64,000 bases of DNA from Paraphysomonas bandaiensis (GCA_965644295.1 CBFFRP010000430.1:186001-250000), one strand, 5' to 3'. Shown: positions 39,363-49,165, numbered from the stretch's first letter. A program made the numbers and translations. Notes: generated by a model from the sequence alone, not told the origin.

Positions 39363-41953
39363 TTACGATTTAAATTCAGATACTGCGGTAGTTCTAAGTT
39401 TCTTTTTGAAATATCCATTGGTTTTTCTAAATGATCCTGACGCTGACAAACCTATTTTCCTTATCTTTTGTCTTTCGTTTTTGGGCAGTTGTGCGACTGG
39501 CTTCTTGCTGGAATCATCGTTCTTCTTGTCTACAGCACCGCGGCTGCGTTTGCTTTTTGCAGACAATGAATAAACTTCATCTCTGTTTCTCTTCTTTGTT
39601 TTTTCACTTGCTATTACCTCTTTCGAAAATGCTCCATTAAATATCTTTCCGATAACGTCGTCATGGTTGCGAAGTGCGGAAGGACTCTCACGTAATCCAA
39701 AACACTTGGCCACATGACCCAAATGTAATGACTGAACTTTAAATATTCCCTTCGCATCCGAGGAATGCGTAGCATACGCTCGAACAAAAGAACGAAACGA
39801 CTGCCTTGCGGCATCCAAAAGATAACGGTTCTTCAGCACAGTGGACTCTACCCGTCGCTGTAAAATGACAGCAGTCATTTCATCAACATTTTTAAACTTG
39901 CCTGACCCGGGAATCTGGGAGGAAGACTCCAGGAAAAGGTTTTGTAGAGACAGAGGGCGCGGTGCCATGCCGTGTGACTGCAGCAGCTGTAAGTACTGCG
40001 CCTCGGAGGGCAATAAGAAAATGACAGCACTTCCCCCTTGACCCCTTCGTGCAGTACGTCCAATGCGGTGCACGTAGTCCGTGGTCTCACATGGTGGGTC
40101 ATACTGCACGATCCAGTCCACACTCGGCAGATCTAGACCTCTCGCGGCAACGTCAGTGCAGAGCAAAACACCTTTAGAGGCATTACAGAACTTTTTGTAC
40201 ACCTGTTGCCTCGATCGTTGGGGAACATTTCCATGTAGACGGTACATATTGCACTCCTTACCAAATATGCCTGTAAAGGTATACTCTAGCGGATCGAGGT
40301 AGTGGTCCGATGTATCGGTCTTGGTCTTTGGAGTCCCACCTGTGGAATCTCCGCTAGAAGAATCTGCTATAGGAGCATCCAGCTCAAGGGGCCACTCAGT
40401 GTTGTGCATCAACAATGCGTGATAGTCGACAGAGTCACATGTGGCGAAGAAGACCATCACCTTCTCATGGGAGTGTAGCCGCAAGAAACTCAAGAGCGCA
40501 GCCAGCCTCCACTTACAGGTGACCATCATAAAATATTGTGCCAGCTGCTCTGGAGCTTCCATCATCTCACCCTCATCCAAACCACCTCGCTTTTTCTTTG
40601 GTCCTACTTCCTCTTCCACTACCCCCTGCACAGCTCCAGTGCCGCCGTCCAGCCGGCCCGTGTCTTTGCCAAGAGCAAGGAGGTCAGTAAGATCGTTCAC
40701 TGGCTCCACGCTTTGACGCTCTGCATCCACCACAAGAAACCCACGTCCACCCATCACAGGCATCGCCAAGTGCTACGAAGTATGAATTATTCACACAAAA
40801 TTACACAACTAAAGCACACCTTCACTGCCTTTGTGAGAGTCGCCGACGCCATGAGGAACGAGAGCTTAGAAATGTCGGTACAGACCTTTGATTGGTGCAA
40901 AGACTGCTGTTGCCACTTGTGTTGCAGGTTATTTCTAGCCTCACTGGGCGCTGTTCCTTCTGCTACTTTGAGTCCAGGAAGCTGTGTACCAATAATAACG
41001 CTACAAATTTCCAAGATAGTCTGCTCGAACCCCATGTCAAGTAGCCGGTCCGCCTCGTCCAACACAAACCAACGCAGGTGGTTGAGGTTGAAGCTCTCCG
41101 TTGCCCTAACATGATCGAGGAATCGTCCTGGCGTACCAATAAGCACTGATATTCCCTTTCGCAGACGTGCCTTTTCGCTTTTACGTTTCTCTCCACCAGT
41201 GATGGAGCCACCTACAATCCAGACGCAGCACTTAGTGAGAAGTTCTAATACATCTGCTATCTGAGCACAGAGCTCTCGGGTAGGAGCTAAAACGACAGCG
41301 TAGGTTCCGTCCGCTCGACTAACCGCAGGAGACATGGTCATCAGGTCATTGATTACAGGTATTAGGTATGCCAGAGTCTTCCCAGATCCTGTCTCAGACT
41401 TCATGAGAATATTCTGCTTTTCTTCTAAAGTGGGAATCACAACACTCTGTACGCGTGTGGAGGACAGAAGTCCCATACCCCCTTTCTCTCGTGGACTTTC
41501 TAGGTGACTTACTAACCGTTTATCTAAGTTGAAAGATGAAAAAGCAGTGCGAGTAAATATGTGAGAGCTTCCCACTGACATCGCAGGACGTTTTAATGCA
41601 TTCTTGGATAAATCTCTTGGTTTAGCATGAAATTGCATTGGGTCCTCTTCTATAGTTAATGTATGATACTTCTCGTTAGCAGGTTTCGGTACGACAGGCG
41701 GCTCAATAGACTGTGACTGTATTTTTTTGACCTTCTCAGGCTTCTTCTCAGTCTTCTTGACATCACTATGGGGTGGTTTACTGTCTCTCTTGTTGTTATT
41801 AATAATATTAATTGACTTTTGTTTAATATTCTTTTCAGGACGATTTTCATGTATATTTATGGGTTTAAGAGAGGGTTTGGGAGGACTGGGGAGGGTCTCT
41901 GTGGTAGAGGGTTCCCCGAAGTTGATATTCAGCTCAAAATCATCATCAAGCAT
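39363..41953 (-). CDS. DBP7: DEAD-box RNA helicase DDX31/Dbp7
   Basis: SETGSGKT, PTREL, GGEKRKSEKARLRKG, DEAD, SAT, HRIGRTAR and FVRAYATH. One intron at ~40770-40819. Confidence 0.93.
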
Positions 41954-42274
41954 GGTGTATATATGTAATAAAGGTGAATTAAGTATATATGTATGATATA
42001 TAGAGTTCTGGACTTCTTGTATATGTATGTCTAGATGTGTGTAGTACTCTATCCTCAGCCAATGAACATACACCTCCTGTGTGGGTGACCTCACTATACT
42101 ATAGTATAGCAGTACATTCGTACACAGGTACACAATGACCATATGATAAAATCATATATACGCTGCTGTATTATTGTATACGGTGTCCATAATAAACAAA
42201 AAAAATACTGCAATATCACAGAATCGAACCTACGATAATATAATACATTTATATATTCAATACACTCTCGACAT

Positions 42275-42296
42275 GTTTGAGCTTCGGCTCATCAGT

Positions 42297-42328
<32 letters not shown>

Positions 42329-42384
42329 GGCCCCTGGGCAAGGATGACACGCATAAATCGAGAAGATGTATCAAAGTTTTTTTT
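42275..42384 (+). ncRNA. U6: U6 spliceosomal snRNA
   Basis: 5' hairpin TGAGC-TTCG-GCTCA, AAAATTGGAACGATACAGAGAAGATTAGCATGGCCCCTG.GCAAGGATGACACGCA core and oligo-T end. Confidence 0.96.
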
Positions 42385-42409
42385 TCATTTTTTACTACAA
42401 TGCTACCTA

Positions 42410-42490
42410 CTATCTTATGGAATCTCCTGTACAATCTTATCCTATGAAATCTCCTGTACAATCTTATCCTATGAAATCTCCTGTACATCA
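42410..42490. repeat. ~28-bp tandem repeat (about 3 copies) downstream of U6
   Basis: CTTATCCTATGAAATCTCCTGTACAAT repeated. Confidence 0.85.
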
Positions 42491-42681
42491 TAGATGTACC
42501 TATAGAGTGACCCCATATCCTATTCTTATACGTATATTTTCTGTACACAGCTACCTATAAGAAGATACGACTCGTCAAGAGATCCTACATACATATAAGA
42601 ACAGACCAACTCCATCAATACACACCACCTCAATACAATTTAAACATCATTATAATCAGATTCTATTAAACTTCATTACAT

Positions 42682-44424
42682 ATGAAATTTACTGCATTCA
42701 TTACTATTCTTATTGCTATATTAGCTGTATATTTCAAGACTGAATTATATGCAGCAGCTGTCGCATGTACCATCCAAATATCTCTATATGCAAACAATTA
42801 TTTCTTTTTATCTCTATTTTTTAATGGATTCACACCTGAAAACTCACATTTTCCATCTTTAAATATGGGAAATCATAATATATTAACTATGAAATGGATA
42901 TACGTATTCAGATATATGTTTAAAGACCAGTTCTTTATGTCATCTCTTGCTGATGAAACACTTACTGATATTGAGACACGTCTACATAAACAATTTAATG
43001 ATAATGGATGGAATATAAGTACCTTCAGTGAAGTCCCTGTACCTACAATACAATGGGGAGATATCAGCCCTGAAGAGTTTCATTCCAACTACGTTGTTCC
43101 TGGTGTGCCTGTTATTCTCAAGAATGTTCCAACATCTGCAAGAGAACTATGGTCACCTGAGTTCTTTGCATCTAATTATGGAGAACATGAAATTGATGTT
43201 GTGAATACTATTACACAGTCTGTATTGCGGATGAATATGTCCCGATACGTGGATGCCCATCGTTCTGATACCGATCCTGAACGTGGGACGGACACGTGGT
43301 ATATTCGCGCTCTCAGTGACATATTCGACGTGTACCCGGTGAGTATTTACAAGCTGAATATGCACACTGTGATGAAAATTCTATATGATAGGAGCTGTCT
43401 GAGCAAGTTAACCCCCAGCAATTCGGAGAATATCTCAAATCTCGATTTATTACCTCCCAGATATTCATGGGGATGGTACAATCATCGGGAACATCTTATC
43501 ACTGTGCGAATTTCAACAACCTTTTCTTCCAGGTCAGCTAGTTTGGTGACTTGTCAATGTATTATAACTGCATTTTTGTCTATACAATATAGATACAAGG
43601 TCGGAAAAAGTGGACGTTCGTGTCACCACAGTACAACGCACTAATGGTATGCACTACTTCGCTCGACGGTTGATACTGAACTTATTTTTGTCTCACAGTA
43701 CCCCATGTTCAATGAAAAATCTATGGATGTGGCATCTTTTGTCACCACGGTAGCACTGGGATCAGACGATATTATGAAGTCTCACTTCCCTCTATACCAG
43801 GTATTGACCTCATGTTGTGATGTTGTGATAGTGATGCTCCTAACCTTGGTCCACAGTATGCTCCTAAAATGACTGCTGTCCTTGAGCCTGGGGATGTACT
43901 AATGAATCCTCCAGTAAGTCTAATTGCCTCTGCGATTGTTTCCTAATTAACTATGTTTCATTTGCTGCAGTGGCAATGGCACATGATTGAGAATTTGGAA
44001 CCGGTGTCAATTGGAGTGGCGACGCGATGGTTCCTTTCCCCTGGTCAGAAGTATCAAAACGCGGTGCACTCGACCTTACAATTTCTTAGTCCTTATATAT
44101 GGTATTTATTCGTATTTATATGAGTGACATCTCACTCTAGACCTGTGGTGACCGGTTTGCTAAATTTGAACATTCTGTGCCACAACATTCATAACATATA
44201 TATCCCATGATAATTAGGTTTATGTATTTGCATACTTTAATTTATGACGATATCACAGGAATCTGTATTACTCTAAGATACTCAATCTGGAGCGTGGAAT
44301 TAGGGCACACAAAGCCTCGAACACACCTCCTATGGACGAGAGATTTAACTTTGGTGTCAAGGGATCTGCTGCCGCATATCGACCGAAAATATTTCCAGCT
44401 AGCGTGTACAAGTCGAGCATGTAG
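42682..44424 (+). CDS. JmjC/cupin-8 Fe(II)/2-oxoglutarate enzyme with N-terminal signal/anchor and H-C-A...H metal motif
   Basis: FHSNYVVPGVPVILKN, IFMG...GTSYHCANFNNLFFQ|IQGRKKWTFVSP and LEPGDVLMNPP|WQWHMIENL across seven exons. Confidence 0.85.
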
Positions 44425-45238
44425 TTGGTGGAAGTGATCCGTTCTTGGTTTCACTTACATGAGCTGATATGGAATTCACTTCGTATTTATCAATTATACA
44501 CACTCTTATATGACAGGTATGACAATGAAATGCACTCTATACTTAAATCACAACTTCGAGCCTATCTCTCAAATATTTCACGAAGTCTTACATTCCAACA
44601 AACCATCAAACATGCCATTTTTATTCTAATGTTTCTGCAACAAAGCACAAGACCTGGTATTTAAGTAAGTTTAGCTACTGATTTGTAAGTTCTTGCTTTC
44701 ACTGGAGATTATCTTTTAGTCTAATCCTAATCTGAACATCACATAATTACATAATTTGAACATCTATATAACTCTTAACTGGAAGGGTTTTATCCCCACT
44801 AATTTACTACGGTATCATTTTTTCTCGAGTACATTCACCTTCGCTATTAATGGCGTTGATATGGAGTTTTATTCTGCATCAAGTATAGGAACTAGAATAT
44901 ATCATTTACAGATCCCTACGAAATACCAATATAAATATAATATTATTCTTTTAGAGCGAAAGTGGGTGCACCCTGGTGATTGCGGTGACGCACAATAGTA
45001 GTATATCAGAGTTAAGCACTAGTTTGTTAACTTGCAATGCTACATTAGTTCTGACTCTTAAACGCTTATTGCTAATAACCAGACATCCACAACTATTATT
45101 CGGGACCAGGAAGACAAAATTACATTTGTAGTATTATAAGTGTAATGAATATTTTTACTTTCATTTCAAATGATCCTATTTATATACATCTCTAATACCT
45201 ATTTTACTGGCTCCAGGGATAAATGCCACTCTCTCCAC

Positions 45239-46681
45239 CTACGATATATCAAGCTCACTGATTCGGAGAAAACGGTGGTAAAGAATAGGACTTCTTGTCG
45301 CAAACTCTTCAGGGTTTTCAGCATAAGCTAATATTATCGCATCCACAGCGGAACGAAATCCATGCAGCACAAGAGACACGCATGCGTAAGAAAGAGCAAA
45401 ACACTCCATAAAAAATAATGGCCACATTGGTTCAAGTCCCTTAGTCTCGATCGACGCGACAGCGATAAGAATAGCCGACAGTGCTATGGCGCACCATGAT
45501 GCGATCATCTTAAGCAGGAAACTCGTTGAATCTAGAGCAACTATATCCACTATATCGGGGTACTTGTTGGTAATGGTATTGGAAGCCTTATGCAGCGTGT
45601 GGCCGTATGTACCGATAGAGCAATGTGCGAGACGGTGGTGGCTGCGGGCAAATGGCTCGACAGTACTCCGGATAAGGAGGATAACCCGAGGGGCACAGCA
45701 ACTCACTATAGCGGATATATGCCCGTACGACCGCAGCCTCCACTGTAGTACAGTCATTGTGGAAAGCACACCCTGGCTCGGTGGTACTAGCAGTGCTGCT
45801 TTGCACACAGAACCCATACATGGCGAGATAGCGCACCGCAGATACAACAATACTTGATTCACGCAGTCATTGCGCCGGTATACGACATTGTTGTTCCTGA
45901 CAAAAGTCCATAAATAGGCACTAGAAACAATTGTTCCGAGAAATGAGTGAAAAAATTGAACAATCCAGTACAGAAAAAACATCATCACTATTATGAGAGC
46001 TACACCTTGAGCAATGCTGACCTCTGATATCAGGTAAACAAACAATACCCCCCACCATAGTAACACAAACATTTGCACCAAGACGACTACAAAACAAACA
46101 AGAGGAAGCATAGAATCAAAGTAATCGAGAATTTCGATGGCCAAGTCCAAAAGAGACATCGTTGAATTCAGATTCTCTTTAGCGTGTTGGAACCTTAGTG
46201 AATCCCATACAATTGAAAGAAGTATTCCAACACCAACGACCCAATAATCGGTCCAGATAAATATACTACCAACGCATAATTTCACAATAGCGGATAAGTA
46301 TATTGCTGACGAGAAAAGAGAGTCCCGAACCCACCCAGGATACACCGTCACGCAATACAATGCAACCCCAGAAAAACTAGCTAGCAATGGAGCGATCATT
46401 ATCATGGATGCCCAATTTCCGGCATATTTCGAAGATATCAACGATTGAGAATACGCAGTTTTCCGAATTAAACATGACAACAATATCATGACAACAAAAA
46501 TAGTGCCAAATGCAAATGTATATAAACCATCGCGTCTCTGTGAAGGGGGCTTCGATATTGGAGCCGAGCTATAGTTGCCAATAGCATGACCAGATGGTGT
46601 GGATGGTTGTATAGTTTCATCTTCATTATGATCATGGTGGGTGTCTTCAGTAGTAGCAACTTGAGAATACTGCATCATCAT
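45239..46681 (-). CDS. Choline-transporter-like (CTL/SLC44/Pns1) multi-pass membrane protein
   Basis: RRDGLYTFAF start, ~10 TM segments, MGSVCKAAL, IGTYGHTL and SAVDAIILAYAENP. Single exon. Confidence 0.75.
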   Translation of the reverse strand: MMMQYSQVATTEDTHHDHNEDETIQPSTPSGHAIGNYSSAPISKPPSQRRDGLYTFAFGTIFVVMILLSCLIRKTAYSQSLISSKYAGNWASMIMIAPLLASFSGVALYCVTVYPGWVRDSLFSSAIYLSAIVKLCVGSIFIWTDYWVVGVGILLSIVWDSLRFQHAKENLNSTMSLLDLAIEILDYFDSMLPLVCFVVVLVQMFVLLWWGVLFVYLISEVSIAQGVALIIVMMFFLYWIVQFFHSFLGTIVSSAYLWTFVRNNNVVYRRNDCVNQVLLYLRCAISPCMGSVCKAALLVPPSQGVLSTMTVLQWRLRSYGHISAIVSCCAPRVILLIRSTVEPFARSHHRLAHCSIGTYGHTLHKASNTITNKYPDIVDIVALDSTSFLLKMIASWCAIALSAILIAVASIETKGLEPMWPLFFMECFALSYACVSLVLHGFRSAVDAIILAYAENPEEFATRSPILYHRFLRISELDIS

Positions 46682-46874
46682 TATATATATATATGTATAT
46701 GTCACAGCACAGTCAAATTACTCTACTACTGAGGGGAATGATAGAAGAGAAGGTGCTCAACCTCCTTAGAGTGATAGCCGGTGAGAGTAGAGTTTATCGG
46801 GTAATAGCGAGTGCATTGGGAGATAATACTCATATACTCGATGGCATATCCCCGCTAATACAGTATACGGCAGC

Positions 46875-47193
46875 TGTATGTATGTATGTATGTATGTATG
46901 TATGTATGTATGTATGTATGTATGTATGTATGTATGTATGTATGTATGTATGTATGTATGTATGTATGTATGTATGTATGTATGTATGTATGTATGTATG
47001 TATGTATGTATGTATGTATGTATGTATGTATGTATGTATGTATGTATGTATGTATGTATGTATGTATGTATGTATGTATGTATGTATGTATGTATGTATG
47101 TATGTATGTATGTATGTATGTATGTATGTATGTATGTATGTATGTATGTATGTATGTATGTATGTATGTATGTATGTATGTATGTATGTATGT
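46875..47193. repeat. Perfect (TATG)n microsatellite, ~79 units
   Basis: Directly visible. Confidence 0.98.
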
Positions 47194-47271
47194 GGTATAT
47201 TCATGCACTCATGCAATCAATTGTGTTCATATACTGCAGCTCTCCATCCTATATTAATACATAACCACAGG

Positions 47272-49165
47272 ATGCTGCGCTATCATCGTATTGCAAAATC
47301 AGCTACTCCCTGCCGTCGTTTTCTAAGCATCGGAACAGGAAGATCACCCAATGAGTCCAGTGGTGGATGGATATTAATCCCCACACTTGCAGTGTCAACA
47401 GCATTCGGCACTGCATATATGATTGAACATAAACATATTAATGAAGAAATTTCTGAGAAATTACGGTTTCTTGAACCAATACAGAAAGTGTTACGTGATG
47501 CTGGATATGGCAGACATGTTAATCATGAGCCTGTTAATGTGGAGAAGGAGTCAGAGGCTGATGATGAACATAATAAGCAAGTGAATGATCAGATCAATGC
47601 TGAATTGACGGAGTTAGAAAATGCTGTGGCAGAAGATATTGAATCTGAACCCGTTCAAGAGCAGGAAGAACAATCTACTGATTCGGATGACACTGATGCT
47701 GTGTCAACTCCCGATGATGTTGATGCTTCCCCTCAGAATCAGCACGAGAATGAAGAACAAAATCAGCAGGATTCAGCCACAGAGGAGCAATCGGAGGAGA
47801 CTGTTCCTGAGCAAACAGAAAATGTTGATGAGGAAAATGTAGCTCCATCTACTGACAACTCTTCATCCACCGCTGTCGCAGAGGAAGCGAAAGTCGTGGA
47901 GGAGCCCGTTTCAAAAAAGGATGCCGAAGTCGCAACAGAGAATAGCAAACCAGCAACTGATGCAGAACGCCTACTTGCTCTGCGCGTGTCTGCACTGGAG
48001 GAAGTGTTAGGCAAGGCAGCGCGCGACGCAGCTGATCTCCGTGGGGAGACAGAGCGCACATTGATTCGGGACCTGGAAGAGCTTGACACTGCAGCTCTCC
48101 GTTACCGCATCGCCCAGCTGACTACAGAGTTCTTTGATCGTGTCAAATGGGAGGGCGCCAGACAACAGCAAGCACTTAAGGAGGCTGAAGCTCTCTTCGC
48201 TCAGCGATACGGAGAGTTACTATCACAGCAGAGAGGTGAATTAACTGTGGAGATGGAGCGCCGCGTACTGGAAAAGGAACGAGAGTTGATGAATGTCTAC
48301 CAGCAGAAGCAAGAAGAAATACAGCTATCGTACGAGAAGCGTCTGCAGGAGGCGCTATCTACCCAAGCGGAGAAACTGTCTCGGGGCACCAAGGAGGAAG
48401 TGGAGAAGCGAGAAGCAGAGCTCAGGGCGGAGCTAACCGATGAACACACTCACGAGTTGGCGATGCTAAAGGAGCGTCACGTAAAGTCCCTTCTTGAGGT
48501 TCAGAACGAGGTCACTGCAAATAATGCTCAGCTTGCGGCCCTGCGAGATGTAGTAGATCAGGAATTCGGGCGCACTACTGTATCGTCATCCTCGCACGCT
48601 CTCTCAGCCGCTGTTCTCATGGCTGAGTCCGCGCTACGTTCTTCTTCTTCCGCCAAGAAAGAGCTCGAGGCACTAAGAGTTTATGCGGGAGGTAAACTGG
48701 TTTATTTTTATAAATGTCGCTGACTCTGTAGTTTTAGGCGATGAGCTAATTCTTGCAGTTGTGGACTCCCTACCTCGCGCGGCTTTCACCACCGGTGTAC
48801 CCAACCTCCCCATCATCAAGGCCCGCTTTAGCGTTGCCAAAGAGGAGGCACGTAAAGCAGGGCTTGCTCCAGAGGGCGCCCCACCAATGTTGGGACAGAT
48901 GATTGGCACAGCTTTAGCATATCTGTCTTTTGAGCCCACAGCTCCGGTGCAAGGGGAGGGAATCGAAGCAGTTTTGTCCCGTGCCGCTTCGCATGTTGAT
49001 GTTGGAGATCTGCAGCTAGCCCTTGAGGAGATCGACAGTATCAAAGGCTATCCGCGAACTCTGTTGAGAGATTGGGAGGCGATGGTGCGAGATAGGCTTG
49101 TCGCAGATCAAGCGGCCAAGGCTTTACGAGCTGCTGCGTCAATTAAACACGCTCAGTTTATTTGA
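47272..49165 (+). CDS. MIC60: MICOS subunit Mic60/mitofilin
   Basis: Presequence plus one TM, acidic linker, coiled coil and C-terminal mitofilin domain (VLSRAASHVDVGDLQLALEEI...RDWEAMVRDRL). Intron at ~48692-48737. Confidence 0.88.

Follow-up and report, generated by a model that had tools for sequence, protein, structure and literature searches.

Gene structure and transcripts

The window analysed in this study comprises 64,000 nucleotides (nt) of the Paraphysomonas bandaiensis genome (GCA_965644295.1, CBFFRP010000430.1:186001-250000), of which positions 42300-44800 were read in sequence. At 42682-44424 on the plus strand it carries a gene of the JmjC type, in the following the JmjC gene, whose product has alanine in the position of the acidic iron ligand. 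Sequence comparisons and a structure model give this gene a slightly better than even chance of encoding a membrane-anchored radical halogenase of an alkyl chain, similar to the halogenase OocP of oocydin biosynthesis.

Seven exons, all bounded by GT..AG, join to an open reading frame (ORF) of 1308 nt encoding 435 amino acids (aa). The exons and the features of main interest, in window coordinates, are:

42682..43338 (+): exon 1, aa 1-219; hydrophobic helices at the N-terminus, a helical extension and the start of the Cupin_8 domain; Y207 at 43300-43302
42685..42819 (+): putative membrane anchor, helices aa 2-17, 19-38 and 40-46, from hydropathy and structure model
43392..43532 (+): exon 2, aa 220-266; beta-strand II with T253, H256, C257, A258 and N262
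43500..43508 (+): H256-C257-A258, encoded by CAC TGT GCG; H-x-D/E position, Ala instead of the carboxylate
43593..43646 (+): exon 3, aa 267-284; GRKKW at 43599-43613, K271 (43605-43607) at the position of the lysine for the C5-carboxylate of 2-oxoglutarate (2OG)
43699..43800 (+): exon 4, aa 285-318; PLYxYAPK segment, common to OocP, running on into exon 5
43857..43913 (+): exon 5, aa 319-337; LEPGDV turn with G330 and D331
43971..44101 (+): exon 6, aa 338-381; WQWH at 43971-43982 with the distal H341 (43980-43982); R356 at 44025-44027
44259..44424 (+): exon 7, aa 381-435 and stop; C-terminal tail with the conserved D407 (44335-44337), beyond the part alignable to OocP

RNA-derived contigs from three studies contained all six splice joints as modelled, with skips of 53, 60, 52, 56, 57 and 157 nt. 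Differences in single letters were confined to 42846, 42927, 43242 and 43302, and the codons of the H-C-A motif were unchanged. Two of the three runs are labelled as RNA only by guess, and the third, a marine polyA metatranscriptome, covers the last three joints only; as contigs, these data inform on presence and splicing, not on expression level. Furthermore, a transcript-derived protein from MMETSP, P0032 (MMETSP1103, taxid 36769, that is Paraphysomonas, Chrysophyceae), equals the model except for V217A. The JmjC gene is thus intact, spliced and expressed. In the protein, Pfam models detected Cupin_8 (1.6e-25) and JmjC_2 (1.4e-6) domains. A second copy of the family was looked for within the 64-kb window and was not found.

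An initial annotation of the window had described an intact seven-exon JmjC gene with a hydrophobic N-terminus, H-C-A at 43500-43508 in the H-x-D/E position, and a retained distal histidine and 2OG-binding context. The gene model and transcripts agree with this description, as do the hydropathy, alignments and family conservation given below.

Conservation of the iron and 2-oxoglutarate site

A word search yielded 27 homologues. An exhaustive search gave 1730 cluster representatives with E<=1e-3; at E<=1e-10 there were 509. The family alignment combines the 149 best representatives with the homologues found before, and 164 of its sequences span the motif; finer column conservation was counted over 143 near-full-length relatives. 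HMMER alignments placed H-C-A in the register of the H-x-D/E column of JMJD5, FIH and OocP. H256 and A258 were invariant in all 27 homologues from the word search. Among the 164 relatives 152 have H-x-A, 131 of these being H-C-A, so that the close homologues carry this motif and not H-x-D, which would have spoken against the halogenase assignment of the initial annotation. The remaining sequences include 3 with H-x-G and a few with Ser, Thr or Val at position 258, and only 3 have Glu or Asp; a small residue (Ala or Gly) is found in 155/164. H-x-A is therefore a hallmark of the aligned family and not a quirk of one gene.

The other residues of the site are kept to a similar extent. K271 is present in 162 and H341 in 159 of the 164 sequences. 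H256 and H341, which align with the ligand histidines of strands II and VII, are 98-99% conserved, and Y207, N262, K271, D331, H341 and R356 are each conserved in at least 91% of the near-full-length relatives. T253 is present in the JmjC-gene protein, while its column alternates with Ser and Ala among relatives. By their register in the alignment, Y207, T253, N262 and K271 correspond to FIH Y145, T196, N205 and K214, which bind 2OG. The alignments thus place H256 and H341 in the iron-ligand columns and the four other residues in the 2OG-binding columns. Of the features of the superfamily, the fold profiles of the double-stranded beta-helix (DSBH), the two histidine ligands and the 2OG lysine were found, and the Asp or Glu of the facial triad is replaced by Ala258.

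Some inactive JmjC proteins have lost the carboxylate ligand, and the protein might accordingly be a pseudoenzyme, catalytically dead and limited to the binding of a ligand or partner. Both histidines and all 2OG-binding positions are, however, nearly invariant over hundreds of divergent relatives, which argues for machinery under selection. Since the gene is also intact, spliced and expressed and relatives lie in biosynthetic operons, we consider a pseudoenzyme very improbable.

A different objection is that a third protein ligand, such as C257, D407 in the tail or another residue, completes a non-canonical triad, which would make the protein an ordinary oxygenase. C257 and D407 are conserved in 83% and 86% of the near-full-length relatives, respectively, and the tail carrying D407 falls outside the part aligned with OocP. 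On the other hand, many relatives, the Abyssibacter clade among them, have Ala, Ser or Asn in place of C257, and the +1 position of JmjC strand II, which C257 occupies, points away from the metal. D407 lies in a tail modelled at lower confidence (predicted local distance difference test, pLDDT, about 70-80), and D331 belongs to a G-D/E turn that is found in canonical JmjC enzymes too. A third protein ligand thus appears unlikely.

The carboxylate exceptions include two H-C-E proteins inside the membrane-anchored branch of the family (P0045/P0188 and P0053). Hence the column of position 258 is able to accommodate a ligand, and natural sequences switch between the two states. Such switching has also been described in other families of halogenases and hydroxylases (PMC13489965). 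The H-C-E variant P0188 is encoded at L019:2183-3517, and one H-C-E gene adjoins a P450 gene, as does the H-C-A gene of Fischerella described below. P0188 and P0053 represent natural controls for the role of Ala258.

From these comparisons the JmjC gene belongs to a large Cupin_8/JmjC group without the acidic iron ligand, of which OocP is the only characterised relative. NCBIfam contained no model for the family, and the ESM Atlas returned generic Cupin_8/JmjC clusters only.

Relationship to OocP and other known enzymes

The best sequence match in the PDB was 8a82_A (2.5e-20), with H-Q-G aligned over H-C-A, followed at a distance by JMJD5 (about 1e-12) and FIH (about 1e-5). A full-length AlphaFold model built on 50 relatives reached a pLDDT of 92.3 and a predicted template modelling score (pTM) of 0.91. 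In a Foldseek comparison the best fold match was again 8a82 (4.3e-22), titled 'Fe(II)/aKG-dependent halogenase OocPQ' (aKG, alpha-ketoglutarate), and further fold matches were FIH, TYW5 and JMJD7. VIA-align superimposed 324/354 residues on OocP (model residues 54-392) with Z 29.1 and a root-mean-square deviation (rmsd) of 3.0, compared to 225 residues and Z 22.9 for JMJD5. The resemblance to OocP thus extends over the entire soluble body, with the helical parts beyond the JmjC core.

OocP belongs to the oocydin trans-acyltransferase polyketide synthase (PKS) system of Serratia plymuthica. It is an Fe(II)/aKG halogenase that acts in trans and, with OocQ as auxiliary protein, chlorinates the oocydin polyketide as it grows; its substrate is an aliphatic chain (PMC11260071). 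As OocP is a proven halogenase, a JmjC-fold radical halogenase is already known in kind. Both proteins have the Cupin_8/JmjC fold over nearly the whole chain, the Thr, Lys and distal His columns, the PLYxYAPK...LEPGDV segment and a small residue for the carboxylate. In contrast to OocP, which is soluble and bacterial, has Gly at this position and acts with the OocQ partner on a PKS-bound substrate, the JmjC-gene protein is eukaryotic, has Ala and is presumably anchored. Two of its parts have no counterpart in OocP, the membrane hairpin at the N-terminus (aa 1-46) and the conserved tail at the C-terminus (aa 393-435). Neither a PKS gene nor one resembling OocQ was noted among its neighbours in the window, where a search with the OocQ sequence was not made.

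With JMJD5/KDM8, FIH, TYW5 and JMJD7 the protein shares the DSBH core, the histidines on strands II and VII and the lysine on strand IV. These enzymes differ by their H-x-D triad, their protein or tRNA substrates and the lack of an anchor, and only about 225-260 residues could be aligned. SyrB2, CytC3 and CurA-Hal, which are PhyH-like, and BesD and WelO5 likewise have the H-x-A/G...H site, together with the chloro-ferryl chemistry that is predicted to act on unactivated carbons (PMC6817910, PMC13489965, PMC2938197). All of these belong to another branch of the cupin superfold, and a sequence relation to the JmjC-gene protein was not detectable. AspH is, like the JmjC-gene protein in our reading, a 2OG oxygenase that is anchored in the membrane and holds its iron by two histidines (PMC6817910), but it differs as a hydroxylase of epidermal growth factor (EGF) domains with tetratricopeptide (TPR) repeats and lumenal orientation, and it was absent from the sequence and fold matches of the JmjC-gene protein. 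In an atlas of halogenases mined from AlphaFold models (Kipouros and Chang, Nature 2026), the two-His-only site served as marker and 70 unexplored clusters, some of them eukaryotic, were reported; the enzymes validated there, AspX and BtnX, are CurA-like and not Cupin_8 proteins, and the exchange G117D/E turned BtnX to hydroxylation (PMC13489965).

Membrane anchor

The N-terminal window of 19 residues has a Kyte-Doolittle hydropathy of 1.84, and the hydrophobic segment begins at residue 3. In the AlphaFold model aa 2-17, 19-38 and 40-46 form confident helices arranged as a helix-turn-helix. A hydrophobic N-terminus followed by a conserved IGYxN..Q.K motif is common to the eukaryotic clades and the closest bacterial ones, namely Fischerella, Abyssibacter/Salinisphaerales, a TARA metagenome contig and Exilibacterium, which include cyanobacterial and gammaproteobacterial relatives. 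More distant H-x-A members lack the hydrophobic N-terminus. The presence of the anchor in bacterial homologues points to an old membrane anchor and not to a secretory signal specific to eukaryotes.

The initial annotation had proposed a candidate radical halogenase of the secretory pathway. A lumenal enzyme of this type, acting on secreted proteins or glycans, would fit the hydrophobic segment starting at residue 3, and lumenal 2OG oxygenases such as AspH exist (PMC6817910). Bacterial homologues with the same anchor, however, can be expected to need a cytoplasmic domain for access to Fe(II), 2OG and carrier-bound substrates, and the genomic contexts of relatives (see below) indicate lipids, not proteins. 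Moreover, the two consecutive helices, modelled as a confident hairpin, would lead the chain back to the N-terminal side. We infer that the catalytic domain must face the cytoplasm in bacteria, and the hairpin would place the algal domain likewise. The anchor therefore argues for access to membrane and lipid rather than for a location in the secretory lumen, and we regard a lumenal halogenase as improbable. Of the initial proposal, the halogenase candidacy is strengthened by the conserved H-x-A, the retained 2OG-binding residues and OocP as nearest match, while the assignment to the secretory pathway finds no support, the anchor being common to bacteria.

Genomic context of relatives

Several bacterial relatives are encoded in biosynthetic loci. 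In Fischerella PCC 9431, two nonribosomal peptide synthetase (NRPS) genes are followed by the H-C-A-N gene, a P450 gene and a gene for a free carrier protein. The TARA contig (L014:2017-13465, plus strand) carries genes for an acyl-AMP ligase, a fatty-acid desaturase, a CylC-like (dimetal) halogenase, a desaturase, a CMAS-type methyltransferase and an acyl carrier protein (ACP). These are joined by two tandem H-C-A-N Cupin_8 genes and by genes for a docking-domain reductase, an acyltransferase, a third desaturase, a flavin monooxygenase (FMO) and a glycosyltransferase. The Cupin_8 copy of this contig is 36% identical to the JmjC-gene protein. By its gene content the cluster looks like a pathway to a multiply modified fatty chain, which is probably polyhalogenated.

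In Waterburya (contig L005) a desaturase, an SDR, a sulfotransferase, a PhyH-family gene, a desaturase-like gene and a Cupin_8 gene were found together. The PhyH-family protein (L005:7251-8402, plus strand) had SyrB2 (2.5e-28) and CytC3 as best PDB matches, with H-Q-A aligned over the H-Q-A of SyrB2, and has an N-terminal hydrophobic segment of its own. The Cupin_8 gene has H-C-A-G and carries an in-frame stop and a 3' truncation, due to either decay or an error in the metagenome-assembled genome (MAG). This operon is a candidate bacterial cluster for a halogenated sulfolipid. In Exilibacterium an FA_hydroxylase gene follows the family member, and a distant H-x-A member sits in a cluster with sugar-nucleotide and sulfotransferase genes. 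The contexts in Abyssibacter and Prochlorococcus were uninformative.

In the eukaryotic metagenome contig L011 (16674-20213) the intronless member P0010 has an FA_hydroxylase gene and a cytochrome-b5/FA_desaturase gene within 9 kb; this proximity is weak evidence and may be due to chance. On two further eukaryotic contigs no cluster was seen. Across the membrane-anchored branch, family members recur beside lipid-modifying enzymes, carrier proteins and halogenases that belong to other families, which supports an alkyl-chain substrate in halogenated-lipid pathways.

Halogenation or hydroxylation

In the reading that we prefer on balance, an OocP-like halogenase held at the membrane, Ala258 would leave a free coordination site at the iron that is taken by chloride. 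Reaction with O2 and 2OG would then give a chloro-ferryl species, which would abstract hydrogen from an unactivated carbon and return chlorine to it. The N-terminal helical hairpin would keep the enzyme on the membrane, and the substrate would be a long alkyl or acyl chain in or at this membrane.

The main competing reading is that the enzyme hydroxylates, or desaturates, a lipid-like chain with the same two histidines: H256 and H341 would hold the iron, water would fill the free site and the ferryl would hydroxylate as in AspH. There is precedent for this, as the metal of AspH is held by two histidines only, the D201G variant of FIH is catalytically viable and AspH did not halogenate in the presence of chloride; thus, the motif alone does not decide the chemistry (PMC6817910). 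Further points weigh against halogenation. The protein and OocP are no more than about 21% identical. With 509 representatives at E<1e-10 the H-x-A clade is very large, and its varied contexts include sugar-nucleotide clusters, so that halogenation need not apply to all of its members. Other halogenases, SyrB2-like in the Waterburya locus and CylC-like in the TARA locus, are already present, and the Cupin_8 enzyme could hydroxylate there instead, e.g. to supply the hydroxyl group that is needed by the sulfotransferase in the same operon.

On the other side, the nearest characterised relative is a halogenase, and AspH is not among the matches. The H-C-E variants suggest that hydroxylase chemistry, where it is wanted, comes by a restored carboxylate, and the strictly small residue at position 258 fits an anion site. 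We therefore regard hydroxylation as a serious possibility, although it is not the expected outcome. If it applied, the protein would be a rare natural example beside AspH. JmjC-fold halogenation as such is known from OocP, and what is new here is the anchoring in the membrane, the occurrence in a protist clade and the context of lipid genes. As a halogenase, the protein would be the first of the JmjC-fold type to be membrane-bound and the first from a protist, even if the link to lipids fails. It would furthermore give access to a clade with hundreds of H-x-A Cupin_8 members that are as yet uncharacterised.

Taxonomic distribution

A quick maximum likelihood tree with support values from the Shimodaira-Hasegawa-like approximate likelihood ratio test (SH-aLRT) joined the sequences known as eukaryotic in one clade (SH-aLRT 99) with two subclades. 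All eukaryotic members that carry a taxon name are chrysophytes, namely Paraphysomonas, Dinobryon sp. UTEX LB2267 and Dinobryon divergens. Paraphysomonas is represented in clade A (P0032) as well as in clade B (P0193). The eukaryotic sampling is biased, and the MMETSP sequences P0018/P0033 and P0044/P0189 have no taxon label. A bacterial origin had been raised as a question in the initial annotation; the family extends over bacteria and chrysophyte-named eukaryotes, and the quick tree gives the eukaryotic clade no definite sister group and no direction of transfer. A eukaryotic Fe/2OG halogenase is already known in plants, the enzyme DAH.

Possible role in chlorosulfolipid biosynthesis

Since the 1960s chlorosulfolipids have been recognised as major lipids of chrysophyte membranes, and they are suspected of acting as shellfish toxins (PMC13413282, PMC5632803). 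First described from the chrysophyte Ochromonas danica, they later turned up in Poterioochromonas as well; in O. danica the flagellar membrane has danicalipin A as its main polar lipid (PMC13413282, PMC5632803). In the literature searched, no halogenase was named for the unactivated carbons of these lipids and no marine producer is known, a recent survey having left chrysophytes unassessed.

The chrysophyte clade may tentatively be connected with the long-sought halogenases of the biosynthesis of chlorosulfolipids of the danicalipin and malhamensilipin type. Several paralogues with the anchor would share the work on a sulfated long-chain diol within the membrane, a single unactivated position being chlorinated by each of them. 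Expression in a chrysophyte, the anchor, the likeness to OocP, the halogenase-type site and the bacterial clusters with halogenation, sulfation and lipid genes fit such a role. We nevertheless hold this connection to be rather doubtful, since an orthologue from a proven producer was not identified and Paraphysomonas is not known to make such lipids. If it holds, the gene family could mark unknown marine producers of polychlorinated sulfolipids.

Neighbouring genes in the window

No biosynthetic cluster surrounds the JmjC gene, and neither a PKS nor a carrier gene was found near it in the window. Its neighbours are a DEAD-box helicase, a choline-transporter-like (CTL) gene and an ORF of no assigned family:

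39363-42142 (-): two adjoining ORFs resembling one SPB4-type DEAD-box helicase (DEAD domain, then Helicase_C and CTE_SPB4)
42279-42380 (+): complete U6 spliceosomal small nuclear RNA (snRNA) gene (Rfam, 93.6 bits, model positions 1-105), followed by a T-run
42405-42490: about 3 head-to-tail copies of a unit of about 27 nt (…tatcctatgaaatctcctgtacaatct…)
45239-46705 (-): CTL gene, downstream of the JmjC gene
46693-48723 (+): ORF of 676 aa beside the CTL gene, without Pfam match

The two helicase ORFs are probably one gene split by a short intron. The U6 snRNA gene ends upstream of the JmjC gene, at a distance of about 300 bp from its ATG, and the repeat copies are located between the two genes. 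One RNA-type contig (run X9) reaches upstream of 42600 toward this repeat stretch.
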